A DNA stretch of 64,000 nt. Source: Trichosphaerium sp. ATCC 40318 (taxonomy: Eukaryota > Protista > Tubulinea). Below are positions 11,101 through 55,250 of this stretch, piece by piece. The DNA is taken from the NCBI GenBank assembly GCA_038496445.1, contig JALMLS010000271.1:62001-126000 (forward strand), read 5' to 3'. Made by a program: the position numbers and the translations under genes. A model generated the notes under the pieces. It ran no database searches. It saw nothing but the letters and a program-made list of their open reading frames with translations, and was not told where the DNA came from. Numbering within the stretch: position 1 is the stretch's first letter; every line of letters starts with the position of its first letter.

Positions 11101-12951
11101 CTACAATAATTGTTCTGACAATCTTCTGATACAACGGTCTCTTTCAATAAATGCTGGTGCTACTATTGTAGGCGGAATAGGTGGGTTGAAATTAAACGCT
11201 GATATACCCTCACTTATTGGTACATTTGTAGCCAAAACAGTAACATCAAAAGTTGCAATATCAATTGAAATGTATCTTCCATCACGACAGGAAGCCACCA
11301 AAGTACTTGTTGATATTGACGTTAAACCTAATAAACCAATTAATAGTAACAACTTGTATAAAAGCTTGCCTGCAATATCACATCCATCTAGAGATGTGGT
11401 ACTTCTTTGTGGCGTACATGAACCAGATAAAAAAGTGTCTGAGGCTGTCAGTATATTATTACCACCCATGTATAGAACGCCATCAACAATTTCACCTGTT
11501 CTGTGTAAGTAATATGACTCAATAACTATTTCACTTGCCTGCTGAAGCGAAAGTTCTTTGGTTAGTACAGTAAGGTGTAAATCTACAGTTTTCTAAATCT
11601 ATCTCATGAACAAATGGTACTGGACCATGTCCATATATTATTCCAGTCTGTTTATCTACCATCAATCCAAAGATTTGAGTACCAACGACAATACATTGTT
11701 TATCCTAGGAAAAAGATTATGATGTAATATAACATGTTGAGCTGTCTCATACAATTTGACAAGTGTAAGGATCAACTGAGAATATTCGTTGTTGTGCTAA
11801 GTTTGTTGTAATGTACAGTATTCTATCAAGTGCAGCACTGTACTCCAAAGCGATGGGAAACCTTTCCAGTATTGGATTATCGCAGGCTGAATAGATAATT
11901 AGAAATACAATTAGTCTTGTTAATCTGTACACCCAACAATTTCATTTATGTTTGAAAGCAGCCGATAGTCAAATCCTAGTACAGTATCTCCCTTTGCTGT
12001 GATTAGAACATTAGGCGCTATTGCTCCTTCAAAAAATAATGAAGAAAAGCCACCAGTTCGTGAAGGTAGTGATGTTGTAAACTGAGTTATTATGGATGTA
12101 GAAATGTCCAAAGAAAAGAATCTTATTGGCTCTAGATTAGTGACAATAATTTGATTATCTGAGATTGCTGTCATATCTAGAAACAGTTATGACAACATAA
12201 CAGAAAAAAGAAATACCAGCACTGCTTATTAATGCCGATTGTGGATAGTCGACTATTTGAGAAACTACACAAGATGAAGGTCCTGTTAATGGTGCTATAG
12301 CGACTCCTTGTTCCAATGCAGAAATGTATAATGTATCTCCAATTATTTCAACTATTATTAGAACAAAGTTAGACACAACAAGCAAGTACTGCCTTCGGAC
12401 GCACTTCCAGATAGTCCCGATTGAGTATTGATGTTTACTTGACAAAATTGACTAAATGAGCAATCTGTTGTATCTATCTGAACGATAACCCCACTGGATG
12501 TAAACCCATATAATATTTCTGAAGCTTTGTCAATAGCAATACTCTGAAAATTGGAGCTCAAAGAGCAAGAATGCTTAATCAAAGTAAGTAGTGTATTGTT
12601 TGTGACTTTTCAATATTTTGTTTTCTTATGTTACCTTTACTTCACACGTGCGTGGATCTACTTGCAAAAGATCATCTACAATTTTAACGAATACTGTTTG
12701 TGTTGATGGCAAATAAGCCATAGAAAAAGATGAACCAATATTTGAACCATCACATGCTAGATTACGTTAGAACTTTATCGTTTATTGTAATAGAGTGTTG
12801 TACTTTGTACAGCAGACGTTGGATCATCTATAGGTCGTATTTCAAACCCGCTACCACCCTCTCCAATAATAATAAATGCGTTATAATCTTGTGATAGTGA
12901 ATACGCAATAAACAAAGACAGAAATGAGAAAAACCAAGTTGTGGCGTTCAT
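11101..12951 (-). CDS. Secreted tandem-domain (putative double beta-propeller) family, copy A; lacks the Pro-rich linker
   Basis: Signal peptide MNATTWFFSFLSLFIAYSLSQ; family motifs GFEIR, VDPRTCEV, IAIDKA, EIIGDTLY, GFDYR, CDNP; C-terminus PAFIERDRCIRRLSEQLL*. Confidence 0.8.
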
Positions 12952-13199
12952 TTTGTGTTTTTCTGTTTTGTTCTTTTTGTGTTTTCCCGTTAATTAAGAT
13001 TCAGTTAATGATTTGGGATTCATCGGGTTCCGAGATAAATACACATACAAGCAACTTACTTGCTACTAAAAAGTCAAATTCATCTCAATCCTCTTTTTTT
13101 CCATGTTTGTTAACCAGCTTCACTTTGGGTCTAACCGACACCAAAAAGTCGTTAAACGCTTCGTTAACATGTCTACTCAGATCAGACTTATAAGAACGT

Positions 13200-14071
13200 G
13201 CTAGGGCATTGTATTTTTCTCAAAGTTTTAATACTGTATTCAATTGTTGACTTTGTAAGTAACGGAAACACTTTCTTGTCAAAACGGCGCAAGTATCCTC
13301 TTACAAGTTGTTCACATTGCCAAATTACAGATTTTCAAGTACTTCGAAAAATTGAAGTGCTTCCCAAAGCGAAGACTGCTATACAAAGTGTGAACACCAA
13401 CTAAGTACTTAACGCCTTTATCACTATATTTGTGAAGCTAACATCAATCGCATGTACTCCAGCCAATACCTTTATCCCTTCATCTGTGATGTGATGACAC
13501 TTGCGTAAAAAAACTGAATGAACACCAGCTAACGTCCTTGAGTACTTCGTCTGTCACTAAATAAGTCTAATGTATGTATATTGCCTTTAGACCTTCGTCG
13601 TTAACATAAGTGTCTGAGAACCGTATTGTTTTTACTCCAGACAGATGTTTGAGATGATCATAAGTTATACATTTAGTACTACATCTTAACTGATGTAAGT
13701 CAATACTCAACGCATTTAAAAGCTTTAAAATCAGATGGTTTCAGGTTGATATGCCACGTTCATCTTCAAATACAAGACCATACGCTTCTTTGAGGTACTT
13801 TAAATGCTAACGTTCGAAATAAAACTTAATGGATAGAGTGTTTGTCTTGATGAGATGTCGGCAGTTTTTTGAATAGTTTTTTGAGCTTTTGTTTTGATTC
13901 GATGACAATCACTCTTCTGGTTTCATATCCCACGTGTTGTATTGCTATCATTTTTAATAATTTTGATGTACGTACTGTGGAATGTAGATAGAGGGCAAAC
14001 GAATTGTAAAATAATGACAATAAGTTCAACAGGGATATCATCAAGAATGCGCTCTTTGAGTTCATCGCCAT
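13200..14071 (-). pseudogene. Decayed F-box/LRR gene
   Basis: F-box ILDDIPVELIVIILQF, QHVGYE segment and LRR remnants (LAGVHSVFLRKCHHITDEGIKVLAGVHAIDVS) split across frames. Confidence 0.7.
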
Positions 14072-14365
14072 TTATTTTGGATAATAGAATTTGATTATGA
14101 GTAACGTATAGACCAGAGACGAGAACTAACGCGATATTAGCTGCACTGTGACTTAATATTTTTATGGGTACCAAACCTACCTTTGCTGTATCTTGGAACG
14201 TTGTACACACAAGAATGTAAGAGCTGTTGCGACTGAGTTGAAAGTTAAGTGATTCTATTTTACTTGTGTTTCAAGTTAGACATACAAGTAAACAAGGTGA
14301 TACAAAAAACACGTGTTTTTACAGAAGGTGGTTATGTTTTAAATCCAACAATGTTCATCTCTTCT

Positions 14366-15149
14366 TTACATCATAGCACACCGTCTTTTTGTTTTACTAG
14401 GTTTCGGTCGTTCTAAATGTTTTGACATCTCTCGAACAAGTTGATGAAAAGCTTCATGAACATTTGTGTTTGTTTTAGCTGATGTCTCAAAAAAAGGTAT
14501 GCCATAATGTTCTGCAAGCTCTTGTCCTTCAGATGTTTCTACTTGTCTCTCGTCTTTTAAGTCAACTTTGTTACCAACTAATACACCATAGAAAAACTCT
14601 GGGCTCTTAATCCTATCAACAAGTGTAAGATTGACTCTTGGAATTTGTCTAGCTGAAACACTAGTTTTTTTGTCATCTTGGTCTTCACACGTACGTAGTA
14701 ATAGCCTTGCAATACTTTGGTATTTCTTCAAAGGATGTGCGATCTGTAACGGAATACACAATAAGAAACCCTTTCCCATAACGAACGTTCTAAAACAACA
14801 AAGTAAAACTTCCTGCTCAACCAAAAAAAAAACGTGATAGCTTTCGAAAAATACTTACACCATCAAGCATTTCAGAAGGATCTCCTCTACCTGCTGTATC
14901 CAAAATATCCATCGATACCATATAATCATCTACTTTGACTAGTTTGCGGTGTCTAAAAGGAGTGTGGGTCTTTGTAGTTGTCGAAAAAGGTTAACAGGCC
15001 TCAAAATAGCTTAAAACTGGCTAAACCGCGTACCCATCTTCTATAGTCGGGTCATAGGACTCATAAAAGTGATCCACTACAAACCGGAGTACTAGGTTTG
15101 ATTTTCCCACCCCAGGTTCTCCAATAACTGCTATTTTGTACTCTGACAT
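14366..15149 (-). CDS. Ras-family small GTPase (4 exons) with CaaX
   Basis: [17 protein letters not shown]...YDPTIEDG|HRK...[16 protein letters not shown]|[22 protein letters not shown]...GNKVDL...FETSAK...KRRCAMM*. Confidence 0.92.
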
Positions 15150-15519
15150 CAATGGTATAGCTGGAGTGTGTTTGAATGTCGTAATTTTGTATCCACCAAT
15201 ATTTATAAATAGAATTCACTGAACTAATTTAAACGAGCACGAATATAAGAAGAAGTTCAAGTTGTGTACTGTATCTATGTTGGCTGGTTCTTCCTATGAA
15301 CAGTTTGTTATTTACGCTACCAAAAAATTGACAAAAACAACAATAAAATCTTGAAAGAGTAAGCTTGTGAATGCGACTCACTACTTCGTCTTTTCTACCT
15401 CTTAATTTCATCCTTTGGCTGCCTTCGTTTTCTGCCAAACCAAGACAGCTGTCACTACCTTGCTTGACGATCTAGGTTAAACAGCGATGTGCTTAGTACC
15501 CGTGTGTTAAATTAAATTG

Positions 15520-16040
15520 GTTGCCAAAAGTGTGTTTAGTTGAGAGTATCTTTAGCTTATCAGTAAAAGGTATGTACAATACTCTATCTAATGCAGCACT
15601 GTAAATCAATCCAAAAGCATCACTTCCAAATTCAGGATTATCACATGCTATCAAAAGATCATTAGTTTATCAGGACATCCTATTCTGTCGGAAAGTGATC
15701 GATAATCAAATCCTGTTACTCCAAAACCTTTTCTTGCGATTAAAGTCTCAATCACACGTTGAGGTGCTATGGTTGGTGGTGAAGTTGGCATGACAGGAGG
15801 CATTGTTGTATCATCTGGTGGTGGCGGTTCGTAGGTCCTTCGAGTAATATTGCAGATATGCCACCTCCATTTAGAGGTAACGATGTTGTAATCCTTTTCG
15901 TGCTGATAAAGACGTTGTAAAATCGGTTATCGTTGTTGATAAGCGTCTGACTACTTTAGGCATGTTGCTGTTGATAAGGCAACACAAGTAATAAGGCGTC
16001 TTTAATTCTGGACATATCCTTGTGATTGATCCATGTAGCG
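15520..16040. pseudogene. Scrambled fragments of the tandem-domain secreted family
   Basis: Minus-strand remnant (LPLNGGGISA, PPPDDTTMPP, GFDYR, CDNPEF; frameshifted) at about 15520-15935, next to a plus-strand remnant (VAVDKATQV...VIDP) at about 15960-16035. Confidence 0.7.
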
Positions 16041-16434
16041 TTTATTTAGCACGTGTACTATCATTGGAAAAACAAAAAAGCGTTGCTAAGTTATAACTTA
16101 ACGTGATAATTTGTTAACTTGGCTTTATACATGTTTGTGGGATACAGTTTCTGTAGGCAACTCAATGTGTACAATTTGCAAGGTACAAGATTACAGGGAC
16201 ACCAAATGGTATTGAGCTTCAGAGTTCTTTTGGTACTGCTGTACGCTATTCGCAGGCTCAATGTTTTTGACATTATTGTATCTACCAAGCCTTTTGTGAT
16301 AACGTAGCGCTATAATCCAACGATACGTTTGACTGCAACTTACACAGCTTACTAGGAGTGATGGCAAATTAACTTGTATTTCAATACCAACTAAACAATC
16401 GATTGTGGCAATCGTCTTACAGTTGTTACAAGTA

Positions 16435-18371
16435 TTATACTATTGATTGTGACAATCGCCTTACACACCGCTCTCTATCAACAAATGCTGGTGCTACAGG
16501 TGGAGGTGGTGGATCGTAATTAAATGCAGATATACCAAAGCTTGTTGTTGCATCAATATCAAAGGCAGTTACAGTATCAGTGGTGATGTCAATAGAGATG
16601 TAAGTTCCACCAAAACAAGCAGCAACCAATGTACTTGATGATATTGATGTTAAACCTGAATAAATTGTAAGTTGTACAAACTCTACACACTACACAATGT
16701 ATGTGAACAACTTACTACTAACAAAGCAATCACCAACATCAATTGATCGTGAAGATTCACATGACCCGGACAGAAAGTCAGGCAGCACATCCATAGGAAC
16801 ACCAGCAGTACCAGCATATAGAGTACCATCAATGATTTCTCCTGTTACAATAAAGTATATTAGTAACTAACACATTTGTGATTGGTTTTTAAATACACGT
16901 GCCACTTAAGGTATTTATAGCACGTGCGACACAACTCATAGTATATTTACAACTTTCAGAAATCAACTTCATAAATAAATGTTGCTAATCCCTGTGCAAA
17001 TATTCTTCCACTCTCTTTATCTGTCAGCAAAGCCATTCTAGCACTGGTGGCACATATTTTATCCTTTAAAATTAGTTCACAGTAATAGTTAATACAACTT
17101 ACAATTTCACACGTGTAAGGATTGACTGAGAATATCTTTCGGATATCACCAGCAGGAATGTACAAGATTCTATCAAGTACATTATTGTAAATCAATGCGT
17201 ATGGATCCATTTCAAATTCAGGATTATCACATGCTATTAATAGATCATTAGTTGGGCGGATGGCAATTGAAAAGTATTCGTACATCCTAAAATAGTGGTT
17301 GTGTCTGAAATCAAGCGATAATCAAATCCTGGTATTCCTTCTCCTTTTGATGTGATAAAAGCATCAATCACACCACGCTGAGGCGCTATTGTTGGAGGCG
17401 GCGTTGGAATGACAGGAGGCATTGTTGTATCATCTGGTGGCGGCGGTGTCATAGTTCCATCAAAAAATAGTGCAGAAATGCCACCTCCATTTAGAGGTAA
17501 CGATGTTGTAAATTGAGTTATCGTTGATGTTCCAATGTCTAAAGAAAAGTAGCTATTTTGAGAAACGATAATAATTTGATTATCTGATACTGCAGTAATG
17601 TCTAGGTAACGAATAGTAAGCACAAAAGGAGAACGAAAAGTAGTAAAGTGTGTACCTCCTGAAAAAAAGAAGCCAGGGTTGTCCACTATTTCAGTAAGGA
17701 CACAAGCCATAGGTCCTGTTAGTGGTGCTATACCTAGTTTTCTATCATTTCCAGAAATGTACAATGTATCACCGATTATCTCCACTAAATAATAACGTGA
17801 ATTACATTGATTGAAATAGGCCTTTATATAAACGTACTATTGTTTACAACAATCCCAATATCAGTTATGTCTACTTGACAAACAGGACGGAATGAGCAAT
17901 CTGTTGGATCTATCACAGCAATACCACCATCTCCTACAAGGCCATATAATATTTGTGTTGCCCTATTCACAGCAATACTTGAAAACGGAACTAAACAAGT
18001 ATTCTAAAAAGAAAATCAAATTAACCTTCTTACCCTCCTAAGGAAGCGTACCTTTACTTCACACGTGTGTGGATCTACCTGTATTAATGCATACGGTGAT
18101 AATGTGATTATAAATAGTGTATTCGTGGATTGCAAATACGCTGCTAAACTGAACACACCCAGGTGGTCACATGCTAAAAAATGTAAGAATACTCTCACAC
18201 TTCGGTAAAATGTCTAGTACCTTGTAGAACCATTGTTGGATCATCCATTGATCGTATTTCAAACCCTGTTTCCAGTCCATCTTTAATTACAAATGCGTTA
18301 TTATCTTGAGAGAGCGTATACGCAAATAAACAAGATAGAACGAGGAATAATAAAGGTGTTGTTGTGTTCAT
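16435..18371 (-). CDS. Secreted tandem-domain family, copy B
   Basis: MNTTTPLLFLVLSCLFAYTLSQ signal peptide, family exon structure, PPPPDDTTMPPVIPTPPPTIAP linker, C-terminus PAFVDRERCVRRLSQSIV*. Confidence 0.85.
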
Positions 18372-18884: not shown

Positions 18885-19370
18885 AACACTCAAACCTCTA
18901 TTATTCCTTTCTATCTTGTTTAGTCGCCTACATACTCTCTCAAGATAATAACATGTATACAATTCGAGGTGGAGCCGGGTTCGACGATCAATGGATGATC
19001 CTACAATGGTTCTACAAAGTAACAAAAAAACTTGCACAGAAACTCCATACTTACAACTTCATACTGTTTAGCCTGCGCCCATGCTGGCTCTATCACCCTT
19101 TCAATAGCCTATTTGCCATCAACACATACACTACTTTATAAAAGATAGTCCCACTGTTAGCCTTAATAGATAAACACATGCACAGTAAAGGTATGGAGAT
19201 AAATAGGTTGCTATTTCGGTTTCTGTTCAGAACATGCATGGCTTGAGCGCTGTAGTTGGTAACCTTGCCATTGATAAGGAAACACAGCTACTTTATGTTG
19301 TATCGGAAATGGCGATGTTGTTGTGATTGATCAAACAGATAGGTCGGTCTGTACTTTTTGCAGTACAGAC
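18885..19370 (+). pseudogene. 5' fragment of the tandem-domain family (ATG lost, frameshifts)
   Basis: SCLVAYILSQDNN, MDDPTMVLQ, YLPSTHTL and LAIDKETQLLY remnants in different frames. Confidence 0.7.
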
Positions 19371-19633: not shown

Positions 19634-21632
19634 ATGAACACTGTAGCGCCGTTCGTAATTCTATCATGTTTACTGGCGTACACGCTCTCTCAAGATAATA
19701 ACGCGTTCGTAGTTAACAATGACCTGACAGGGTATGAAATACGATCAATGGCGGATCCAACAATGGTTTTTCAAAGTACTAAACATTTTCAAACATTTTC
19801 GCTTCCCAAAATTGAAGACTTCGTATGTATTTAAGTCTAAAGCACTTCATTTAGCATGTGACACCCCAGTATTCACTCAAACACCGCTTTCAATGTCTTA
19901 TTTGCCATCTACAAGTACACTATTTATAAAAGGAAGGGATACGTTGTTTCAAGTAGATCCACGCACGTGTGAAGTAAAGGTACGCTCCTTTTGGGTCACA
20001 ATAACACTATCGTAATATTTATTTTACATTTAGAATTCTTGTGCATTAAGCCGTATTTTTGAGCTTATTGCTGTGGATAAGGCAACACAAATACTATATG
20101 GCATAACAGAAGTAGGTTTCGTTTCCGTGATTGATCCGAATGACTGCTCTTTTTGTCACTATTGCCAAGACATAGCAATCATGGGAGTCACCATCGGAAG
20201 TGAGTCTTCTTCAAATCTTGTGGGTTTTTTTATGTTCGCTAATTCTTGGTTTGTTTAACAGTTGAGATAATCGGTGATACTTTGTACTTTGCTACCCAGG
20301 AAAGATTTTTTATAGCACCACTAACAGGACCTATGGCATGCGTTGTTACCGAAACAGTTGACTTTCCATCACGTGTTCTCACAAAAGGTGACGTGTTTGG
20401 ATTTTCAGTCAATTGTATATTGTTGTACTTATGTGTTACCTAGGTATTACTGCAATATCAGATGATCAAATCATTGGCTTTAATATCGCTTCTAACACGT
20501 ATTTTATTTTGGATATTTCTACATCAATGATAACTCAGTTCACAACAACATTGCCTGAACGACCAGGTGGCATTTCTGCACTATTTTTTGCAGGAACTTT
20601 GCCACCGCCTCCTCCTCCAGATGATACGACAATGCCTCCTGTAATGCCAACTCCTCCACCAACAATAGCGCCTCAAGGAGGTGTGATTGATGCTTTAATC
20701 ACAGCCAAAGGAGAAGGGAACCCAGGATTTGATTCTCGCTCACTTTCAGACACAACCACTATTTTAGGATGTACGAATATACTTCGATTATATCATGATC
20801 CAACTAATGATCTTTTGATAGCATGTGATAACCCTGAACTTGGAAATAGACCGTTTGGAATGGAGTACAGTGCTGTATTTGATAAAGTGTTGTACATACC
20901 TTTCAATGACGACCGACAGCTGCTCTCAGTCAATCCTTATACTTGTGAAATTGTATGTCACAATTAACAGCTACATTATTACGTGATTGTCTTACACTCT
21001 TGCTTTAGGAAAAAACATGTATTACTAGTATTCCGCTTACTGATTTGATGATTGATAAAGAGAGTGGAAGAATATTTGCACAGGGATTAGCACCATTTAT
21101 TTATGAAGTTGATTTTGAAAACTGTAAATTTGTCATTCTTTGTCAGCATCCAACAATAGGCCTTGGTTTTGGTGGTATGAGTTTTTATATCAAAAAAAAG
21201 ACACGTGTTTAGTTTACTAATATAACTTAAACAGGTGAAATTGCTGATGGTGTTCTATACCTCAGTAGTGGTAATTCTATAGAAGCTGTACCAGATTTTC
21301 TATCTGGGTCATGTACATCATCACGCACAATTAGTGCAGGAGATTGTACCATTGCTGGTACGATTCAAACTACCTCTCACTCGTACATGTGTTTCTGTTG
21401 TACAACTCACAATTTCTGTTTAGGTTTAACATCACCAACAGTGAACACTTTAATTGCTTCTTGCCAAGACAGGTCGTATATATCTATTGATATTACTTCT
21501 ACTGATGTTATTGAATTGGATATTGATGCACCTGTGAGCTTTGGTTTTTCTGCGTTTAATTTCAATCCTCCTGTACCAGTAGCACCAGCATTTGTAGATA
21601 AAGAACGTTGTGTAAGACGATTGTCACAATAA
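19634..21632 (+). CDS. Secreted tandem-domain family, copy C (9 exons)
   Basis: Signal peptide MNTVAPFVILSCLLAYTLSQ; 8 GT-AG introns traced; ends PAFVDKERCVRRLSQ*. Confidence 0.85.
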
Positions 21633-22241: not shown

Positions 22242-24050
22242 ATGAACGAATCAACAGCTACCTTATTCTTCGTTCTATTATCTTTATTTGCATGTACACT
22301 CTCTCAAGGTTATAACGCGTTGGCTTTCGGTAACAGTTTAAGAGATCCGATCAAAGGGTTTCAAATACGAGCACTAGATGACCCAACAATGGTTCTACAA
22401 AGTAATACAAGTTTTCCTCCAAAAACACACCTCAAGAGTTTTAAAGCTCACTTCATCTAGCGTGTACATACCCAGATGATTCTGATTTTAAGCCGTTTTC
22501 AATGACATATTTACCAGCAACAAATACACTGTACGGAAGAGGCTCTCAAACACTGTTTCAAATAGATCCACGCACGTGTGAAGTAAAGGTAACACTCTAA
22601 CTTTTGTTACCGTAAAAATGTTAATTACTTTTTAAGCATTCTTGCCCTCTTAGCATTCACTTTCAAGGCATTGCTGTGGACAAGGCAACGCAAGTATTGT
22701 ACGGCATTGATATTAGGGGTTTTGTTGGTGTGATTGATCCGAACGACTGCTCTTTTTGTCATCACTGTAAATTGGATACACCAGATCTTGAGTTTACTAC
22801 TGGAAGTGCGATTTTTTTGTATTTTAATGTTGTGTTTAAGTTCTAATCAATTCGTTTTGAAAACAGTTGAGATACTAGATGATACCTTGTATATTTCAGG
22901 AGATCCTCGTTTTGGTATAGCTCCATTAACAGGACCTATGGCTTGTATTGTTACTCAAACAATAGATTATCCTGAGGAACCAATAGTAACAGGTACAGTT
23001 TTTGTTGGATTTAGTAAATGGTTATATATTTGTGCACTAATGTTGTATTGTTTACTCATTATTTGTTACCTAGATATCACTGCAATATCAGATGATCAAA
23101 TCATTGGATATATTCGATCAGACACTATTGACTCAAGTGGCTATTCTTTGGATATCGGTACCTCAACGATAACTAGATTTACACCAGTATTGTCAGGTCG
23201 TGGCATTTCTGCACTATTTTTTGAAGGAACTTTGCCACCGCCACCTCCTCCAGATGATACAACAATGCCTCCTGTTGCACCGATCATTCCAACACCACCT
23301 CCAACAATAGCGCCTCAAGGTGGTGTGATTAATGCTTTTATCGTGGGGAAAGGAGAAACAATACCTGGATTTGATTATCGCTTGATTTCAGACACAACCA
23401 CTATTTTAGGATGTACGTTCTAATACTTTTTGATTATGCCATGATCCAACTAATGATCTCTTGATAGCATGTGATAACCTTGAATTTGAAACAGATCCGG
23501 TTGGATTGGAGTACAGCGCTGTACTTGATAAAGTGTTGTATGCAAACAAAAACCAAGAGATATTCTCCGTCAATCCTTACACTTGTGAAATTGTACGTAA
23601 TATTCTTGAAAGCTTACATTAGTTCTTATTCCTTTGTTCTAGGACACAAGATGTATCGTTAATGCAAGAGTATCAGGGTTAATGATAGAAAAAGACAGTG
23701 GTAGAATATTCATGGAGGCTATAGGCAGGAGCTCTTTTGAACTCGACTTAGAGAACTGCAAAGTAAATGTTGCATGCAGTGATAAGGAAATCTCTACTAT
23801 TAGTGGTACTTTTATTGATGGTGTTCTGTACCTTGGACGATTTTTATTTTTTGTCGTGGTTGCACCTGATTTTCTATCAATTGGATCGTGTTCACCACAA
23901 CGTATAATTAACATAGGAAGTTGCCAAATTGGCGGTAAGTCTAACACGTGTTTTTTTTTATTTTCATATTTATTTATTTTAGGTTTAACATCAATATCAC
24001 CAACAAATTTAATTGTTACTTGTGTAGCTGGAAATTATCTCTCCGTTTGA
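22242..24050 (+). CDS. Secreted tandem-domain family, copy D (3'-truncated)
   Basis: Family motifs run to TCVAGNYLSV* and then meet the opposite-strand copy E; the C-terminal tag is missing. Confidence 0.75.
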
Positions 24051-25647
24051 AAATCACGTGCAGCTGTAACTGTATTACCACCACTGTATAGAACACCATC
24101 AACAATAGCTCCTGTTCATTAAAGGGTTTGGTTAGTATAAACACGTGATAAGTTTTTTAAGCACGTGCCAGATGAAGCCAAAGTTGTTTCGTCATTGCAA
24201 TATGTTCTAAACTTACAAGTTTCAAAGTCCTCAAGTTCAATAACAAAAGTACTGATGCCACTCTGTCCGAATATCCTCCCACTTGCTTTATCTACTAGCA
24301 ATCCAAAAATGTTGGTACTGATGATGCACATGTTATCCTATTGCATAGAGTAGATAAGACTCAAATAATTAAAATATGACATACAATTTGACAAGTATAA
24401 GGATTGATTGAGAATATCCTTTGATTTCCGTTTATATACAATACTCTATCAAGTGCAGCACTGTATTCCATTGCGAAAGGATCTGTTACCAATTCAGGAA
24501 TATCACATGCTATCAATAGAATTAGTTGGATGTCAGAGATTCAAGTATCCTACTCCGTTCAATATCACCAAGTTCTGAAAGTATGCGAAAATCAAACCCT
24601 GGTACTCCAGGACCCTTTCCGGTGATTATAGTATCAATCACCCCACCCTGAGGAGCCATTGTCGGAGGTGGTGTTGGCATGGCCGGTGCAACAGGAGGCA
24701 TTGTTGTGTCTGGTTGTGATCCAAAGGTGAATGAAGCAAGCCCACCATCTCGCTGAGGCAACGATGTTGTAAAATCAGTTATCATTAAGTTAATAACATC
24801 CACAGATAACATTCCTTGTTGAAACGAAGTAGAAGCAATTATTTGGTTATCAGATATTGCTGCAATGTCTAGATAGAATGAGTAAGAAAAGAGCCTTAAA
24901 TCAATTAAAAAAAAAGCTGTTACAACCTTCTATGAATTTCGGTCCTCCGGGATAAGCCAAAGTTTGAGTTGCAGCGCAAGGCATTGGACCTGTTAAACTA
25001 AACACTCCAAAGGCAATATTACCAGCTATATATAGTGTATCTCCAATTATCTCGACTATTACAAACCATCAACCAAAATAGTTTACTATTAAAACTCACT
25101 TCCATAAGTAAATGGTCCAGTGTTTGAACGGTCCAGTTCACAAAAGTGACAAAATGAGCAGTCCGTCGTATCAATCTCGGCTATAAACCCGTTTTGTGTA
25201 AGACCATAGATTACTTGAGTATTCCTATCGATAGCTATACTAGCAAACCCAGAAATCAAAGGACAAGAGCGCTATCACAAATAACATCGGTTAATTAACC
25301 CAAAAAAAGTTGTTTATTGTTATCGTACTTTTATTACACACGTGTCTGGATTTATTTGAGATAACTCATTAACCGTTTTTACGAATAGTGTACGTGTTGA
25401 CGGTAAATAAGACATTGAAATTGGGTTATCAGTAAACGTTGTGCCGGAACAAGCTAGAATGACCTTAGAACTTAAAAAACTTTTGAAAAATTGCTGTACT
25501 GTTATGTACTGATAGTGGATCAGCCCTTTCCCGTATTTCAAACCCTCTATTATTGGTTGTGGTTATTATGAACGCATCAGATTCTTGCGCGAAGGTATAC
25601 GCGAAATACAAAGGTAACAGGTAGAGTAATAAAGCTTTTGGTTTCAT
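24035..25647 (-). CDS. Secreted tandem-domain family, copy E (divergent; 3'-truncated)
   Basis: MKPKALLLYLLPLYFAYTFAQ signal, GFEIR, INPDTCVIK, EIIGDTLY, GFDFR; ends DGVLYSGGNTVTAARDFQTER*, overlapping copy D. Confidence 0.75.
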
Positions 25648-28444: not shown

Positions 28445-29410
28445 TTATACTTTTTTACCATTTACATAGTTATCACAACTTAACAACTCACCACTGATTT
28501 CCCAAATCTTATACTTTCCTTCTCGTTTACCATTCACATAAAAACCCTTGATTTTTAATACACCATTAAAATGCCACTTCCTGTACATTCCTTCTCGTTT
28601 GCCATTCACATATTGACAAGTCTCTAACTTCCTACCATCATGACCCCATCGGGTATGTTCTCCTTCTCTTACACCGTTTACATAAAAACAGATCTCCAAC
28701 AGCTGACCATTATCATGCCAGTGCCTGTACTTTCCATCAATCTTACCATTGGTATTATTAAACTTCTTCAACAACTGGCCACTATCATTCCAACACTTGT
28801 ACTCTCCTTCTCGTTTACCATTAACAAAATTAGCTCGTCTCCACAGTATGCCAGCATGATTCCAACTCTCACAAAGTCCTGTACGCTGACCATCAATGTA
28901 ATAAAGTCTCTCACTCATCTGACCGTTAGGATGCCACCTGTTAGCCTCTCCTTCAATTTTACCTTTGACATATTGACAACGCTCTATTAATTGGCCGTTT
29001 TCATACCATTGCTTGTATTCTCCTTCACGCTCACCATTGACATATTGACATTGCTCTACAATCTGACCATTGGTATACCAACGTTTGTACTCTCCTCCTC
29101 TCTTATCGTTCACATACATACATGTCTCTAAAATCTGGCCTTCTTCATACCAACGTTTGTACTCTCCATGACGTTTTCCATGTCTCCAGTGTTGTTCACA
29201 TAAAATTATTGAACTCATCTCATTGATATGTCTTTGTTTAATCCATTTGCCATGTTTTTTTATCTCATTATCAAACCTTGTACTAGTAGCTGCCTGTTTT
29301 GATAATATTGGCCACTTGTAAGACAACGTGTTGTCTAAATCCATAATATCGAGCTGTAACTCAAAAGGAAGATTTAAAAGACAGTAGTTAACCATATTAT
29401 CGTTAAACAT
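28445..29410 (-). CDS. F-box-like N-terminus plus MORN-variant (YwqK-like) 24-aa repeats
   Basis: LLNLPFELQLDIMDL followed by about 11 repeats GEYKRWYxNGQxxExCxYVNGKRE in an uninterrupted 321-aa ORF; probable intron just upstream (29413-29449). Confidence 0.85.
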   Translation of the reverse strand: MFNDNMVNYCLLNLPFELQLDIMDLDNTLSYKWPILSKQAATSTRFDNEIKKHGKWIKQRHINEMSSIILCEQHWRHGKRHGEYKRWYEEGQILETCMYVNDKRGGEYKRWYTNGQIVEQCQYVNGEREGEYKQWYENGQLIERCQYVKGKIEGEANRWHPNGQMSERLYYIDGQRTGLCESWNHAGILWRRANFVNGKREGEYKCWNDSGQLLKKFNNTNGKIDGKYRHWHDNGQLLEICFYVNGVREGEHTRWGHDGRKLETCQYVNGKREGMYRKWHFNGVLKIKGFYVNGKREGKYKIWEISGELLSCDNYVNGKKV

Positions 29411-30883: not shown

Positions 30884-32851
30884 ATGCACGCATCAGCAGG
30901 GTTTATAGTTATTGTTCTATCTTCTTTGTTTACGCATACACTCTCCCAAGGTACTGACGCGATAGCAATTGGTAGGGATTTCGAGCAGAGGCCCAATGGG
31001 TTTCAAATACGAGCACTAGATGATCCAACAATGGTTCTACGAAGTAATATGCATAAAAAACACATGCTGGACTATTTTAGCTAAATCACTTCATTTAGCG
31101 TGTTCATACGGTGATAGTGATTTTACGCCTATTTCATTGTCATATTTACCATCAGAAGGCTTACTAATAGGAAGAGGTTTTAGCACATTGTTTCAAGTAA
31201 ATCCACGCACGTGCGAAACAGTATGCTTCTTTTGGTTATTAATATTGCCATAATAATTGTTGTAGACTTCTTGTCTGATTAGTTCTCTCATTCAGTACAT
31301 TGCTGTGGATAAGGCAACGCAAACTCTATACGGTATTACAGAACTAGGTTTTGTTGCCGTGATTGATCCGAATGACTGCTCTTTTTGTCACTATTGTAAA
31401 GTGGACACAACAGATTTATTTCGAACAACTGGAAGTGCGTTTGTCCTTTGTTCTAATCCATTTATTTTGAAATCATAGTTGAGATAGTTGGTGATACCTT
31501 GTACATATCTGGAACTGCGAAATTTGGTATAGCACCATTGTCAGGACCTATGGCTTGTGTTGTTACTCAAACATCAGACTTTGAAACCTTAGCTATTCCA
31601 ACAGGTACAATTTTTTTTGCCGGCCTCAGAAATTATTTACTTCGTCCACGTGTTACCTAGCTTATGTTGCCTAGACCTTACTGCAATATCAGATAATCAA
31701 ATTCTTGGCGCATATAATTTATTTAGCACTTTTTACACTTTTGATATTATGACCTCAATGATAACTACGCTCACAACAACTTTACCCTCTACGGGAACTG
31801 GCTTTTCTGCACTATTTTTTGAAGGAACTTTGCCACCGCCACCTCCTCCAGATGAAACAACAATGCCTCCTGTAATGCCAACGCCACCTCCAACACAAGC
31901 GCCTCAAGGAGGTGTGATTGATACTTTGATCGCTGCAAAAGGGGATACAATACCAGGATTTGATTATCGCTCACTTTCAGACACAACCACTATTTTAGGA
32001 TGTACGAATATACTTCGATTAAATCATGATCCAACTAATGATCTTTTGATAGCATGTGATAATCCTGAATTGGAAACAGATCCGGTTGGATTGGCATATA
32101 GCGCTGTGTATGATAGAGTGCTGTACTTGAACAAAAACCAAAAGATATTCTCTGTTAATCCTTACACTTGTGAAATTGTACGTCATATTCTTAGCAGGAT
32201 ACATTAGTTCTTATCCCTTTGTTTTAGGACAAAACATGTTTTGTTACTATAACATTATCTGGATTGATGATAGACAAAGACAGTGGAAGAATATTCGTAC
32301 CCGTAGAGGGCATAGAAACTTATAATTATGAACTTGACTTAGACAACTGTAAATTTAGCATTTTTTGCGCTGATAAACCTCGCTTTGCTAGTGGCGGTAC
32401 ATTACATAAATGCTGCATAATTGTATATACTTTGCTAACCTATTTTAACAGGAGAAATTCTTGATGGTGTCTTGTACCTTGGTGGGTCTGGTAGCAATGC
32501 TTTTATACTGGTTATACCTGATTTTATATCTGGATCTTGTCAGTTGTCACGCTCAATTCGCGTAGGTTGTACAATTGGTGGTAAGTCCTACAGATTTGTT
32601 AACATTATTGGTAAAGTACAGTCACATTTATCCTGTGTTTAGGTTTAACAGCAATATCACCAACCACTTTAATTGCTTCGTGTACAGATGGGAGTTACCA
32701 CTCTGTAGATGTCACCACTGATGAAGTTACAACCTTTGATATTGATGCTCCGACTAGCCTTGGTATATCTGCTTTTAATTTCAATCCTCCAGCCCCAGCG
32801 TTTGTTGATAGAGAACGTTGTGTAAGGCGATTGTCACAATCATTTATGTAA
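30884..32851 (+). CDS. Secreted tandem-domain family, copy F
   Basis: Signal peptide MHASAGFIVIVLSSLFTHTLSQ, all family motifs, ends PAFVDRERCVRRLSQSFM*. Confidence 0.85.
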
Positions 32852-33511: not shown

Positions 33512-35437
33512 TTATAGTATTGATTGTGACAATCGCCTTACACACCGCTCTCTATCAACAAACACTGGCGCTACAGGTGGAGGTGGTGGATTGTAATTAA
33601 ATGCAGATATACTAAAGGCTGTTGCATCAACATCAAAGGCAGTTACAGTATCAGTGGTGATGTCAATAGAGATGTAAGTTCCTCCAAAACAAGCAGCAAC
33701 CAATGTACTTGATGATATTGATGTTAAACCTGAATAAATTGTAAGTTGTCATGCGCTACACTACACAATGTATGTGAACAGCTTACTAGTAATATAGCAA
33801 TCACCAATACCAATTACTCGTGAAGGTTCACATGATCCAGATAGAAAATCAGGCCAAACATCCAATAACCTACTACTACCAACGTATAGAGTACCATCAA
33901 TGATTTCTCCTGTTACAATAAAGTATATTAGTAACTAACACATTTGTGATTGGTTTTTAAATACACGTGCCACCAAAGGTATTTATATCATCCAAGACAC
34001 AAATAGGAGTATATTTACAACTTTCAAAATTAACTTCATAAATAACAGCTCGTTGACCCAGTGCGAATATTCTTCCACTCTCTTTATCTATAACCAAAAC
34101 CATTCTAGTACTGATGGCACATATTTTATCCTTTAAAATTAGTTCACAGTAATAGTTAATACAACGTACAATTTCACACGTGTAAGGATTGACTGAGAAT
34201 ATCTTTTGGATATCACCAGCAGGAATGTATAAGACTCTATCAAGTACAGCGCTGTACTCCAACGTATTTGCATTCATTTCAAATTCAGGATTATCACATG
34301 CTATTAATAGATCATTAGTTGGGCGGATGGCAATTGAAAAGCATTCGTACATCCTAAAATTGTGGTTGTGTCTGAAATCAAGCGATAATCAAATCCTGGT
34401 ATTCCTTCTCCTTTCCCTGTGATAAAAGCATTAATCACACCACCTTGAGGCGCTATTGTTGGAGGTGGTGTTGGAATGACAGGAGGCATTGTTGTATCAT
34501 CTGGAGGAGGTGGCGGTGGCAAAGTTCCTTCAAAAAATAGTGCAGAAATGCCACCTCCAAATAGACGTAATGATGTTGTAAATGGAGTTATCGCTGACGT
34601 TCCAACGTCGAAAGAAAAGAAGCTATCTTGAGAAACGATAATAATTTGATTATCTGATACTGCAGTAATGTCTAGGTAACGAATAGTAAGCACAAAAGGA
34701 GAACGAAAAGTGTGTACCTCCTAAAGAGAATCCAGCGTCCACTGTTTCAGTAAGGACACAGGCCATAGGTCCTGTTAGAGGTGCTATACCCAATTTTGTC
34801 CGGCCAGCAATGTACAATGTATCACCGATTATCTCAACTGTTACAAAACCTGAATTAGCACAAAATACAAAACAGATTTGCTAGCTAAAAGACGCACTTC
34901 CAGGAGTAACGTCTAAATCTGTTACATCCACTTGACAATAAGCACATACCGAACAATCTGTTGGATCAATCACGGCAATATGACCGTCTAGTGTTGCGCT
35001 ATATACTATTTGTGTTGCCTTATCAACAACAACACGTGCAAAATAATCACTCAGGTCACAAGTATTCTGAAAAGTAAATCAAATTAACCTTCTTACCCTC
35101 CAAGGAAGCGTACCTTTACTTCACACGTGCGTGGATCTACCTGTGCTAAACTTGATGGACTACCCGTCTTAATAAACAGTGTATGCGTTGATGGCAAATA
35201 TGACGTTGATACAGACAAACCAGGGAGGTCACATGCTAAATAAAAATAGTAAATATTCTGGCTAATACAAAAAGCTCTTTGAATAATACTTTGTAGAACC
35301 ATTGTTGGATCATCCATTAATCGTATTTCAAACCCTGTTTCCAGTTCGTCTTTAATTACAAATGCGTTATTATCTTGTGAGAGTGTATACGCAAATAAAC
35401 AGGTTAGAATGAGGAATAATAAAGGTGTTGTGTTCAT
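33512..35437 (-). CDS. Secreted tandem-domain family, copy G
   Basis: MNTTPLLFLILTCLFAYTLSQ through PVFVDRERCVRRLSQSIL*. Confidence 0.85.
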
Positions 35438-44139: not shown

Positions 44140-45078
44140 ATGAACCGCACAGAATACAATAAAAAACCGTTTAAATCGGCGTCTGATACATTGAATAGAA
44201 GGTAAGCGCATCTGGTGATTGTATTGCTCTAAAGAGTTGTAGTGCTCAAAAAACGTTATTGGACATGCCTATTGAGATTCTGGCGAAAATTGTAAGTCAT
44301 TTGCGGCTTGTCAAACATGTCGTATCCTTTCTTCTATCATTCATGGCATTGTTGGGTACCGTAGTATACGTATAAAAACAGAAGAACAAGCAAAACAAGT
44401 TGTCAAACATAAAGGAATCATTAAGCACACAAAAATCAAGATAGAGTTTGATAACCAATGAGTTTCCTTCTGACAAGATTCTGGAACAATTCGCAGGAGT
44501 TCATACAATTTATCTTACATGGTCAAGTGTGACTGATGAAGGAGTCAAAGCACTCACTGGTGTTCATACTATTGACCTTTCTTACACGGATGTGACAGAT
44601 GAAGCTGTCAAAACACTTGCTGGCGTTCATACTATTGACCTTTCTTGCACTGATGTGACAGATGAAGCAATTAAAAGTCTTGTAGGTGTACACTATTATC
44701 CTCCGTTGTTGTAAGAATATTACTGTTGAAGGAATTAGAGCAGTCAAAGATGTACATAAGATTTGGCTCACTTACCCAAAAGAAGACTCATGGCTCAAAC
44801 ACCTTTGCAATGTACACTCTGTTACTATTGGTTATGGGACTACTGTAACAAATGATGGTTTCAGAGCATTGATTAATGTCAAATGCCTTGAGCTTTACCA
44901 TTGTGTCACAATAACTGACCTGGCTTTTGAGACATTGGTCAATCTTGAGCAACTCAAACTGATTAGACTTGGCAATATTACCAATGGTTGTTTGAAATAC
45001 TTAAAGTCTTTAACACGTTTAATATCTGTGGGGTGTACTGGTATTACAAAAGAGGTTGTTGAGTCCTTTTGGTATTAA
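44140..45078 (+). pseudogene. F-box/LRR pseudogene, paralogue of 52070-53333
   Basis: Same short first exon and intron, LLDMPIEIL F-box; a deletion after the F-box and a frameshift near 44693; only about 3 core LRRs. Confidence 0.75.
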
Positions 45079-48898: not shown

Positions 48899-49132
48899 GT
48901 TTGAACTGTCCTTTTTGCGTGTATTGACGCAGCTTCTGAGAGCTAGTCATCTATTTATAAACTATCACGTGAACAAGGTAATCTTTTCCAATGGAACTTG
49001 AATGTGAACTTCAAAACATTAACAGAAAAATGGAGACAAATGACACAATGTGAACGTAAATGTCACTTCTCAATGAAGGTGTTTTTTCATTGTGTATTTG
49101 AAGTAGTTTCTATTACGTGTAACAACACTCAA

Positions 49133-51074
49133 ATGAATACAACACCTTTATTATTCCTCGTCCTATCCTGTTTATTTGCGTATACGCTCTCTCAAGATAA
49201 TAACGCATTTGTAATTAAAGATGAACTGGAAACAGGGTTTGAAATACGATCAATGGCTGATCCAACAATGGTTCTGCAAGGTACTAGACATTTTAGCAAA
49301 GCGTCAAAAACAAGCTGTGTCAGAGTATTTAATTCTTACATACATTTTTTAGCATGTGACCACGTGGGTGTGTTCCGTTTAGCGGCGTATTTGCAATCCA
49401 CGCATACTATTTATAATCACATTTTCACCGTATGCATTAATACAGGTAGATCCACACACGTGCGAAGTAAAGGTACGCTTCCTTAGGAGGGTAAGAAGGT
49501 TAATTTGATTTTCTTTTCAGAATACTTGTTTAGTTCCGTTTGCAGGTGTTGCTGTGAATAGGGCAACACAAGTATTATATGGCCTTACAGGAGATGGTAG
49601 TATTGCCGTGATAGATCCAACAGATTGCTCATTCGTTCCTGTTTGTCAAGTGGATAGAGGTGCTATTGGGCTTGCAGTACGCAATAGTACGTTTATACAA
49701 AAACCTATTTCAATCAATGTAATTCACGTTATTATTTAGTGGAGATAATCGGTGATACATTGTACATTTCTGGGAGTGGTAATAAACTAGGTATAGCACC
49801 ACTAACAGGACCTATGGCTTGTGTCCTTACTGAAATAGTGGACGACCCTGGCTTCTCTTTTTTAGGAGGTACACACTTTTCGTTGTCTTTTTGTGCTTAC
49901 TATTCGTTACCTAGACCTTACTGCAGTATCAGATAATCAAATTATTATTGTTTCTCAAAATAGCTACTTTGCTTTAGACGTTGGAACATCAACGACAACT
50001 CAATTTACAACATCGTTACCTCTAAATGGAGGTGGCATTTCTGCACTATTTTTTGATGGAACTATGACACCGCCGCCACCAGATGATACAACAATGCCTC
50101 CTGTCATGCCAACACAACCTCCAACAATAGCGCCTCAGCGTGGTGTGATTGATGCTTTTATCACATCAAAAGGAGAAGGAATACCAGGATTTGATTATCG
50201 CTTGATTTCAGACACAACCACAATTCTAGGATGTACGAATACTTTTCAATTGCCATCCGCCCAACTAATGATCTATTAATAGCATGTGATAATCCTGAAT
50301 TTGAAATGGATCCATACGCATTGATTTACAATAATGTACTTGATAGAATCTTGTACATTCCTGCTGGTGATATCCAAAAGATATTCTCAGTCAATCCTTA
50401 CACGTGTGAAATTGTACGTTGTATTAACTATTACTGTGAACTAATTTTAAAGGATAAAATATGTGCCATCAGTACTAGAATGGTTTTGGTTATAGATAAA
50501 GAGAGTGGAAGAATATTCGCACTGGGTCAACGAGCTGTTATTTATGAAGTTAATTTTGAAAGTTGTAAATATACTCCTATTTGTGTCTTGGATGATATAA
50601 ATACCTTTGGTGGCACGTGTATTTAAAAACCAATCACAAATGTGTTAGTTACTAATATACTTTATTGTAACAGGAGAAATGATTGATGGTACTCTATACG
50701 TTGGTAGTAATGGTTTGCCTATGGCTGTTCTGCCTAACTTTCTGTCCGGATCATGTGATCCATCTTCACGATCAATTGATACTGGTGATTGCTTTATTAG
50801 TAGTGCGCTGTTCACATACATTGTGTAGTGTAGTGTATAACTTACAATTTATTCAGGTTTAACATCAATATCATCAAGTACATTGGTTGCTGCTTGTTTT
50901 GGTGGAACTTACATCTCTATTGACACCACCACTGATACTGTAACTGCCATTGATGTTGATGCAACAACCTTTAGTATATCTGCATTTAATTACAATCCAC
51001 CACCTCCACCTGTAGCACCAGCATTTGTTGATAGAGAACGGTGTGTAAGGCGATTGTCACAATCAATAGTATAA
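49133..51074 (+). pseudogene. Secreted tandem-domain family, copy H (mosaic of B- and G-like segments; 2-bp frameshift in exon 2)
   Basis: Complete exon set ending PAFVDRERCVRRLSQSIV*; CATACTATTT versus AATACACTATTT in copy B shifts the frame near 49405 (real or sequencing error). Confidence 0.75.
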
Positions 51075-52069: not shown

Positions 52070-53333
52070 ATGCATCGCACAAAAGGTAATAAAAACCCGT
52101 GTGATTTAGCGTCTGATACATTAAATCAAAGGTAAACGTTTATGTTGATTGTATTGTTCTAAAATAATTTGTAGTACTCAAAAAACATTACTGGACATGC
52201 CTACTGAGATTATAGCGATTATTCTGAGTCACACAACCAAATCTCGATTTACGGCTTGTCAAACATGTCGTATCCTTTCTTCTATCATTCACGACATTAT
52301 TGGATACCATAGTATAAGTATAAAAACAGAAGAACAAGCAAAACAAGTTGTAAAGCATTGTGGAATCATTAAACACACAAAAATCAAAGTAGTATCAGTG
52401 ACAGATGAAGGAGTCAAAGCACTCACTGGTGTTCATACTATTGACCTTTCTCGCACATCAGTGACAGATGAAGGAGTCAAAGCACTCACTGGTGTTCATA
52501 CTATTGACCTTTCTCGTACATCAGTGACAGATGAAGGAGTCAAAGCACTCACAGGAGTTCATATAATTAACCTTTCTTCAACACCAGTGACAGATGAAGG
52601 AGTCAAAGCACTCACTGGTGTTCATACTATTGACCTTTCTCGCACATCAGTGACAGATGAAGGAGTCAAAGCACTCAAAGGAGTTCATACTATTGATGTT
52701 TTCTGGACATCAGTGACAGATGAAGGAGTCAAAGCACTCACTGGTGTTCATACTATTGACCTTTCTCGCACATCAGTGACAGATGAAGGAGTCAAAGCAC
52801 TCACTGGTGTTCATACTATTAACCTTTCTCGCACATCAGTGACAGATAAAGGAGTCAAAGCACTCAAAGGTGTTCATACTATTAGCCTTTGTCAGACTGC
52901 AGTGTCAGATAAAGCACTCCAAAGTCTTGTTGGTGTACACACAATTGACATAAAGGGTTGTGATAATATTACAGTAGAAGGAATCAAAGCACTCAAAGAT
53001 GTTCATGTGATTAGGATTGCACCAAAAGACTCCTGGCTTAGACATCTTTGCAATGTACACACTGTCAATATTGCTCTTGGGAGATATTTTACAAATGATG
53101 GAATTAAATCATTGACCAATGTCAAATACCTTGAACTTACCAATTGCCCCTTTATAACAGACTTGGGTTTTAAGACATTGGTCAACCTTGAGCGCCTCAC
53201 CATAGATTACTGTCCACAGATTACAAATGGTTGCTTGAAGCACTTACCATCTTTAAAACAGGTTGCAGGAGTGTACAACAAACTTACAAAAGCATATGTT
53301 GAGTCAATGGGTATCCAATATTGTGGACTGTAA
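52070..53333 (+). CDS. F-box/LRR protein with an expanded 63-bp repeat array
   Basis: Exon 1 MHRTKGNK...NQ, intron at about 52132-52173, LLDMPTEIIAIILSH F-box, then SVTDEGVKALTGVHTIDLSRT repeats. Confidence 0.88.
52395..52898 (+). repeat. Coding tandem repeat, 8 x 63 bp
   Basis: Unit TCAGTGACAGATGAAGGAGTCAAAGCACTCACTGGTGTTCATACTATTGACCTTTCTCGCACA repeated with few substitutions. Confidence 0.95.
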
Positions 53334-53494
53334 CTAGCTCAATTAGTTTGTAATTAGTTAAATAAATAGGCAATATTTATAAGCTATGGATACATCTAGC
53401 AGCTGTTGAGTCAATGGGTATTCAATATTGTGGACTGTAACTAGCTCAATTAGTTTGTAATTAGTTAAATAAATAGGCAATATTTATAAGCTAT
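53297..53494 (+). repeat. About 90-bp direct duplication of the LRR gene's last codons and 3' UTR
   Basis: TGTTGAGTCAATGGGTAT...TTTATAAGCTAT at 53297-53387 and 53404-53494. Confidence 0.9.
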
Positions 53495-53734
53495 TGTAAC
53501 GTTGTTTTGTCTATTGCACAATTTTCTAACTTTTGGATTGTTGAGAGTGACGGCATTAAAGTTCAGCATAAACAATACAGCATTCCAAAATAGTATTCTT
53601 TTCAAGTGTATGTTATAAATAGCTTCTCAACTTATCCCGACTTTGGTAACATACCTTCAAATTGGCACTGGTTTTTTTTGGGGAGATCCTCTCGAAGAGG
53701 GTAATTTCTTGTAGTTGTACTTTCAACTTTGATC

Positions 53735-53915
53735 CTTTTGTTTAGGTTTAACAGCAATATCATCAAGCATTTTAGTGGGCTCTTGTTGTGGTGATGGAAG
53801 ATACAGCACCTCTGTTGTTACCTTCTTTGATACTGATGTTCTAGCAGTAAGTCTTGGTATATCTGGTTTTAGTTCTGTAATTGTAGAGCCAGTAGCACCA
53901 ACGTTTGTTGATACA
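53735..53915 (+). pseudogene. Orphan last exon of the tandem-domain family
   Basis: TTAG|GTTTAACAGCAATATCA (GLTAISS)...GISGF...PVAPTFVD. Confidence 0.65.
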
Positions 53916-54025
53916 ACATTCTACTGACAATGTTTACAAACCAAAGAATTTCATTGCTCATAGTAAATGTCTTTGTGGTTTTTTTTTTCTATTTTTGTCA
54001 TTTATTTTTTACATTCTGTGTAACT

Positions 54026-54340
54026 TTACAAATACCCATTTTCCCTTGCATAGGCTAGCCAATCTTGTTTATTCTGTTGTCGTACGCCTGGGACATCCTT
54101 ATATATATCTCCGGCTATTATTGCTTCTAGAAGGAAGAAATAGAGCAAACTGTGTTCTTCTTGCTCGTACGACTTGAATATAGTTGGTAGAGCAGGTTTA
54201 CCTATCTCTACCATTTTTTTGAACGTTTCATGGTTTGTACGAACTGTAGCTCTTGATCTCATCTTAACGGTCTCGCAGTGTTTTGCCCATGCTGCTAGGA
54301 GCTTCTTTACAGTAGCTTCAACATTGTTTGCGTCTGTCAT
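54026..54340 (-). CDS. Small intronless helical hypothetical protein (104 aa), bacterial-like
   Basis: Clean ORF MTDANNVEATVKKLLAAW...HETFKKMVEIGKPALPTIF...DWLAYARENGYL. Confidence 0.7.
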   Translation of the reverse strand: MTDANNVEATVKKLLAAWAKHCETVKMRSRATVRTNHETFKKMVEIGKPALPTIFKSYEQEEHSLLYFFLLEAIIAGDIYKDVPGVRQQNKQDWLAYARENGYL

Positions 54341-54579
54341 TGCGTTTGAAGTATTATTGAACTGTTTGAAAAATTGTCCACGAAAAAAAATACTTTGTTG
54401 AATTTCTTTGAATAGTTTTTGGTTAGACAACGACTTAAATGGGGCAAACCCCAGGTTCGTTGGAGAATCTGTGTTGTACTCTATTTAATGAAACGGGATT
54501 TTTTTCGACAAAAACTCCATTTTTTAAAAGATCGCTCTGGCACGCTATCAAAAGGCACGTGTTAATAATAAAAAAGCCA

Positions 54580-55250
54580 CCTTGCTTAACAAAGGCACAA
54601 ATATAGAGGTGGATGATTGTACTTAAAAGCAGATATACCAAAGCCGGAGCATCAATATCAACGGCAGTAACTCCATCAGTGGTGATATCAATATGAATCA
54701 TTATTACTACACGGAAAGAGCACAAATTCGACAATACGAAACGCTTATGATTTCTGTATACGCTCTACCATTAAGGTAAGTGTTGTAACCAAAGTAGCTA
54801 AAAACTTGTTTTAGAAAAAGCGAAAAGAATTCAAGAGCTGTATGTTTAGTCACACCAAAATGTATGAGTTTGTCATATTCCAGCCAAACGCACCCGATAT
54901 GAACAAGACTTATCAACCTTCTAACTTCGCTTATGTTGGTCATTACAAAGTAGCAGGTAACGACAAGGTTTTCATAAAAACCACGTGGTAAATTTTCATA
55001 CTGTACAAACTGTTGTGTCTAGGTCGTTTACATTTGGCTGCATACCAGTTTCGTTTAACCCTCAGCTGAACAATATAAGCACAGTACCAATACTGTCGCT
55101 TCCAGAGGAAACCCTTTTATATCCATTTGAAACTGATGGCACTTTGGCGAACGATCTCGGGTTTGTGAACATGCCAAATGAAAACGAGTACTCTCAAACG
55201 TTTGATATTAGTAACAATACTCTTATGAGTGATTACACAAGTATGTTCTA
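54580..55250. pseudogene. Junction of a tandem-domain last-exon remnant (-) and a divergent family X fragment (+)
   Basis: Minus strand 54580-54705 IHIDITTDGVTAVDIDAP..GISAF; plus strand from 54706 YGKSTNSTIRNAYDFCIRSTIK|KKRKEFKSCMF...YEFVIFQP. Confidence 0.65.

Follow-up and report, generated by a model that had tools for sequence, protein, structure and literature searches.

A stretch of 64,000 nucleotides from Trichosphaerium sp. ATCC 40318 (GenBank assembly GCA_038496445.1, contig JALMLS010000271.1, positions 62,001 to 126,000; hereafter the window, to which all coordinates refer) harbors a tandem cluster of paralogous genes. With moderate confidence, we read their products as lineage-restricted secreted proteins of ~500 amino acids, each predicted to consist of two five-bladed beta-propellers and likely acting as extracellular binders of the lectin or adhesin type with one variable face. 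Differences between the paralogues that locate to a single face of the predicted propellers suggest a set of extracellular binding proteins. The window consists of eukaryotic DNA with ~36% G+C and short introns. One copy, c4, was spliced by hand, refined and used as reference model; tblastn of the window with its spliced product revealed eight copies with summed E-values down to 1e-116, which share 46-86% protein identity. Four are intact: c1 (11101..12951, minus strand, ~488 amino acids, lacking the Pro-rich linker, defined by spliced alignment), c4 (19634..21632, plus strand, 504 amino acids, 9 exons), c7 (30884..32851, plus strand, ~511 amino acids) and c8 (33512..35437, minus strand, ~502 amino acids). 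An earlier reading of the window from its letters (the sequence-only reading) had listed eight near-complete copies and at least four fragments. All eight were recovered by tblastn where that reading had placed them, but half of them are defective, by frameshift in c3 and c9 and by truncation in c5 and c6; a more permissive search, using the four intact models and an outside homologue as queries, adds five fragments, with genes and fragments lying on both strands.

The encoded proteins follow a common order of hydrophobic N-terminus, domain 1, Pro/Thr-rich linker, domain 2, a short proline run and a basic tail with one Cys. In the intact copies, the N-terminus contains a hydrophobic core (Kyte-Doolittle 2.0-3.0 over 11 residues) and, ahead of a conserved Gln at position 20-22 (Q21), small residues at -3/-1. 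No transmembrane-like segment follows the N-terminus in these copies, in agreement with the sequence-only reading, and the tail ends in polar residues (RRLSQ plus 0-3 residues). Judged from these protein sequences, the family is presumably secreted. Fourteen Cys are invariant across all copies and the outside homologue, six in domain 1 and eight in domain 2. Profile-profile comparison of the two domains by hhalign yields a probability of 99.7% and an E-value of 1.7e-25 over 207 aligned columns with 24% identity, and a weak internal match between the protein halves also appears in the tblastn search with c4. MAFFT stacked homologous blades and domains on each other, showing the homology of the repeats. 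Introns 1-4, within domain 1, match introns 5-8, within domain 2, in position and phase; the domain duplication therefore copied a block of exons. The two homologous Cys-containing domains described previously are thereby corroborated by profiles as well as introns.

To place the family among known proteins, sequence collections were searched at several levels. A HMMER search with exon 5 against 1.84 billion representatives identified one true relative, a protein of 570 amino acids referred to as P0001 (E 1.1e-9); the query comprises one blade of each domain and the linker, so that very distant relatives could escape. Two further hits were rejected as unrelated long repetitive proteins. P0001 shares both domains and each of the 14 Cys at 34-38% identity, and it is colinear with every modelled splice junction, including that of the intron before the first Cys of domain 2. 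Its C-terminus carries a long Pro/Thr/Ser stalk and a hydrophobic end in place of the short tail. P0001 is a singleton encoded on an intronless JGI contig of 1788 nucleotides with a 3' untranslated end, which therefore is probably a transcript, and probably one of another organism. Word-index searches with whole P0001 or with domain 2 only returned nothing except P0001 itself, none of 80 matches to a conserved exon-6 pattern in metagenome contigs was a relative, and ESM Atlas searches by features and shape retrieved only generic propeller families. Pfam searches with the window exons gave nothing significant. With P0001, Pfam and NCBIfam searches at E up to 10 produced only DUF5074, the sole Pfam family coming near, which stays below its curated cut-off (15.7 bits versus 27.2, E 0.008), and no NCBIfam hit; a profile search of PDB sequences gave nothing meaningful. 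These results support, at the level of sequence comparison, a lineage-restricted family outside Pfam and NCBIfam with no sequence relative in the PDB, and they justify its earlier description as unrecognised. The fold is well known, but the sequence family is new to Pfam and NCBIfam, and database proteins numbering in the billions include only one distant relative.

Structure prediction with AlphaFold was performed on P0001, with window exons and stop-free exon-intron-exon stretches serving as alignment rows. The domain 2 model is all-beta, with a mean predicted local distance difference test (pLDDT) score of 81.5 and a predicted template modelling (pTM) score of 0.75, and Foldseek matches it to WD40, YVTN, TolB and YncE propellers at probability 1.0. 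The domain 1 model, derived from an alignment with some blade-shifted rows, reaches pLDDT 74.6 and pTM 0.75 and contains 20 strands. Five-bladed propellers consist of blades of four antiparallel strands arranged round an axis, amounting to ~20 strands in ~200-230 residues. Both predicted domains display ~20 strands in ~220 residues, and for each of them the best structural matches include five-bladed propellers. Five blades per domain, as the sequence-only reading had proposed, are therefore the best reading of the models. Judging from strand order, a conserved C-terminal strand (GISAFNF-like) would close the first blade.

This repeat organization is mirrored in the genes. Spliced alignments were generated with a purpose-written protein-to-genome aligner that accepts GT-AG or GCAAG-AG introns and penalises frameshifts. 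The common gene model comprises 9 exons and 8 introns of 39-81 nucleotides, each exon corresponding to approximately one repeat or blade. The first Cys of domain 2 (SCDNPE) and the one codon in front of it are immediately preceded by an intron of 44-55 nucleotides. With each blade on its own exon and intron positions repeated between the two halves, a tandem pair of five-bladed propellers clearly illustrates, if the predicted fold is correct, how proteins of this kind are put together.

To map variation, strands A-D of each blade were labelled from DSSP strings and transferred onto the alignment of the eight copies. In standard propeller topology, one face carries the D-A and B-C loops, and the opposite face carries the A-B and C-D loops. 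Mean column entropy amounts to 1.56 in D-A and B-C loops, 0.95 in strands and 0.66 in A-B and C-D loops (D-A/B-C versus A-B/C-D, Mann-Whitney p 2e-14), and indel columns are found at 18 of 99 positions in the former loops versus 1 of 91 in the latter. By topology and within the predicted structure, paralogue differences in sequence and length hence concentrate on one propeller face, as suggested previously, and variation is not spread evenly between the two loop classes. The alignment of copies likewise reproduces the strand-like motifs quoted in the earlier reading, such as YLPST and VDPRTCEV, and the loops of variable length after the first Cys, for instance DHLGVF and DGSNIGSSF. The cluster shares with recognition repertoires the combination of several gene copies and variability focused on the presumed binding surface.

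Active sites of propeller enzymes usually lie on the D-A/B-C loop face, which is the variable one here. Of 78 invariant columns, only 4 fall into the D-A or B-C loops, and Cys, Pro, Gly, Tyr, Ile and Thr predominate among the invariant residues. An extracellular enzyme with an active site in each propeller, as known from glutaminyl cyclases, apyrases and GH43-type glycosidases, is less likely for this reason, since the usual active-site face is variable and the invariant residues are mostly structural. Identity to these enzymes, among them the five-bladed bacterial- or plant-type glutaminyl cyclase and SCAN apyrase, is 7-14% without a hit to their Pfam family models; for Glu_cyclase_2, structural alignment gives 13% identity. 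Together, this makes an enzymatic role improbable. Tachylectin-2, the five-bladed propeller lectin of horseshoe crabs (PDB 1TL2), resembles the family in fold only, at 11% identity, and no Pfam model of the Tachylectin-2/tectonin family matched at E up to 10, whether P0001, its separate domains or window fragments were used as query. Unlike Tachylectin-2, each chain of the family comprises two propellers, with 14 conserved Cys and a Pro-rich hinge. Propellers of the YVTN/YncE/DUF5074 type, found in bacterial and archaeal surface proteins, likewise use blades of ~40 residues, and YVTN-repeat models are matched by Foldseek at probability 1.0 and E ~1e-9, with TM-scores of only ~0.5. These propellers have seven blades; in contrast to them, the family is eukaryotic, intron-rich and disulfide-rich.

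The strength of selection was estimated pairwise with the Nei-Gojobori method and by maximum likelihood (ML) with GY94 codon models in iqtree2, using three taxon sets. In most pairs, omega (dN/dS) is 0.37-0.63 over the whole gene, 0.43-1.3 in the variable loops and 0.2-0.55 in the opposite loops. ML estimates are 0.53-0.66 for variable loops, 0.31-0.32 for opposite loops, 0.32-0.39 for strands and 0.35-0.41 overall, with an overall value of 0.35 when only the four intact copies are considered. Purifying selection acts on the four intact copies, and the variable face changes more rapidly than the rest of the protein, on average not above the neutral rate. The ML values are region averages, substitutions in the loops approach saturation, and the single tree assumed by the models is at odds with gene conversion; individual selected sites may therefore still exist in the loops. 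The paralogues are old, as dS is 0.5-1.1 in most pairs, and their loops evolve near the neutral rate, which renders the term hypervariable, used by the sequence-only reading, an overstatement. Diversifying selection, which that reading had proposed to examine via dN/dS, is not borne out by variable-loop averages below 1.

Lesions and exchange between copies further characterize the cluster. Copy c3 (16435..18371, minus strand) is full length and carries a 1-nucleotide insertion in exon 7, an extra C at 16958 that shifts the frame and interrupts a run of T rather than altering homopolymer length. In c9 (49133..51074, plus strand), a 2-nucleotide deletion in exon 2, near 49409, shifts the frame and again is no change in homopolymer length. 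Copies c5 (22242..24050, plus strand, without approximately the last 50 amino acids and ending at a TGA that abuts c6) and c6 (24050..25647, minus strand, without approximately the last 110 amino acids) meet tail to tail at 24047/24050, where both lack their 3' ends; this junction (24040-24060) is a rearrangement breakpoint between convergent paralogues. Copy c9 is a mosaic of c3-like and c8-identical segments: most of ~49200-50370 matches c3 at 94-100% identity, and 50373-50672 matches c8 at 100% identity. To judge from these identities, the mosaic reflects gene conversion between paralogues. Turnover of the cluster is by duplication, gene conversion and decay, that is, by birth and death.

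Such a constellation might point at a recognition repertoire under diversifying selection, serving self/non-self fusion or prey and pathogen recognition, in which positive selection and segmental exchange make new faces. Confinement of variation to one face, a tandem multigene cluster with gene conversion and birth-and-death turnover typical of such families speak for it, as do pairwise omega values of 1.1-1.3 in the variable loops of some pairs and of 1.8, the highest, for c3-c9. However, the latter pair comprises two frameshifted copies with small counts, ML values for the variable loops stay below 1 in all three taxon sets, the paralogues are old, and only four intact genes are present in the window. 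We regard a repertoire shaped by diversifying selection as doubtful. The sequence-only reading is upheld with respect to fold and one-sided variation; the diversified recognition or coat repertoire that it put forward is a conjectural function that the selection estimates do not support, and half of the copies are broken.

Our preferred reading of the family as extracellular binders with a variable face has to be balanced against several of these points as well, namely the lack of an average omega above 1 in the variable loops in any taxon set and the decay of half of the window copies. Further reservations concern the models. They are predictions for a homologue, built on shallow alignments of exon fragments, with the blade-shifted rows in the domain 1 alignment. 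Six-bladed propellers of the NHL and YWTD types come close behind the five-bladed ones in score, the YWTD propeller of nidogen being the second match for domain 1, and blade count and face assignment rest on strand order, topology convention and the presence of five-bladed propellers among the top matches. Moreover, loops that are more variable than strands are common in propellers and need not indicate a change of ligand.

A structural role was considered as another explanation, in which the proteins help to form a layer outside the cell, for example a slime sheath, cyst wall or spore wall, and are cross-linked via tail Cys and Pro-rich hinge, with loop variation being merely tolerated. The linker is indeed unusually conserved (identity 0.84, omega 0.1-0.3 in most pairs), the number of mature Cys is odd in c1, c3 and c9, the tail Cys is conserved in every full-length copy, and evolution of the loops is near neutral. 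Against this, c1 is intact yet has no linker, present in all other near-complete copies. Variability and indels are furthermore limited to one face, while the other is more conserved than the strands, which fits a binding module better, and we judge a purely structural function unlikely.

For the binding modules that we favor, the following mode of action can be envisaged. The proteins would act outside the cell in the manner of lectins or adhesins, and the variable face, formed by D-A and B-C loops, could make ligand preference specific to each paralogue. The flexible Pro/Thr hinge between the two propellers would permit bivalent binding or cross-linking. By analogy, the tail Cys, or in P0001 the mucin-like stalk with its hydrophobic end, may attach the protein to a surface or to partners. 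A more specific scenario, to which we assign a low probability, is that the cluster forms part of an extracellular recognition system of a slime-mould-like amoebozoan, where paralogue-specific, perhaps allele-specific faces would determine binding, be it of kin during fusion or of bacteria and fungi encountered as prey or threat, and conversion between inverted paralogues would shuffle loops. Among polymorphic or multigene recognition families, TgrB1/TgrC1 of Dictyostelium offer a parallel as extracellular amoebozoan proteins with clustered genes and variability on the presumed binding surface. Tgr proteins have an Ig-like/TIG fold; the window copies differ from them in fold, have no apparent membrane anchor and show variable-loop omega averages below 1. 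To our knowledge, few of the fusion-compatibility and prey-recognition molecules of this protist group have been identified. If the variable face binds ligands, the family would provide a handle on extracellular recognition in these protists; if it does not, the cluster represents one more lineage-specific secreted family.

Upstream regions are alignable only inside the group of c3, c8 and c9. CACGTG palindromes recur ~60-130 nucleotides before the ATG of c4, c5 and c6 and also downstream of c4, and could be a common regulatory element or a chance occurrence.

Several introns deserve mention individually. An apparent frameshift at one common place in six copies was rejected, as it resulted from the missed intron of 44-55 nucleotides before the first Cys of domain 2. 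This intron is intron 5; in c4 (20771-20821) and c7 (32002-32052) it has 51 nucleotides, a multiple of three, and is in frame and stop-free, and it is therefore easily misread as coding. Intron 6 of c3 (17064-17102), c8 (34131-34169) and c9 (50414-50452) has 39 nucleotides, again a multiple of three, and is stop-free. Retention of intron 5 in c4 and c7 or of intron 6 in c3, c8 and c9 keeps the frame, which may reflect alternative isoforms or chance. On the minus strand, GC-AG donors give the best models of c1 introns 7 (11496-11538, GCAAGT) and 8 (11328-11369, GCAAGC); a GT-AG alternative of 34 nucleotides for intron 7 would add two residues, and retention of intron 8, which is in frame, stop-free and 42 nucleotides long, would add 14. 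In c5, the equivalents of exons 7 and 8 are contiguous at 23643-23934 with no intron between them, and the flanking introns are kept. This fusion could be a precise intron loss, perhaps via conversion from cDNA.

Apart from the eight copies, the five fragments are dispersed along the cluster. Fragment f2 (15541..15949, minus strand) corresponds to the exon 5/6 region and is frameshifted, as determined by tblastn and spliced alignment, and a small degenerate exon 3-like fragment lies next to it on the plus strand (15910..16042, tblastn E 0.006). A degenerate N-terminal fragment with the signal peptide exon and remnants of exons 2-3 was identified by tblastn (E 8e-8) and by its open reading frame (ORF) at 18886..19370 on the plus strand. 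Exon 9-like sequences occur as a C-terminal fragment at 53736..53921 (plus strand, E 1e-5) and as a short fragment at 54607..54698 (minus strand, E 6e-4), both detected by tblastn.

Other genes are interspersed. A Ras-family small GTPase exon (Pfam Ras, E 1.9e-18) is located at 14366-14824 on the minus strand between c1 and f2, and a single-exon ORF of 321 amino acids with MORN_2 repeats (Pfam E 2.7e-34) at 28445-29410, likewise on the minus strand. The plus strand encodes at 52149-53333 an F-box protein with leucine-rich repeats (LRRs), which are specified by a 63-nucleotide tandem array (7.9 copies, 90% matches), and a related LRR gene fragment is found at 44528-45078 on the same strand. Shortly ahead of the exon 9-like sequence that starts at 53736, a 107-nucleotide unit is repeated 1.9 times at 98% identity (53297-53494).

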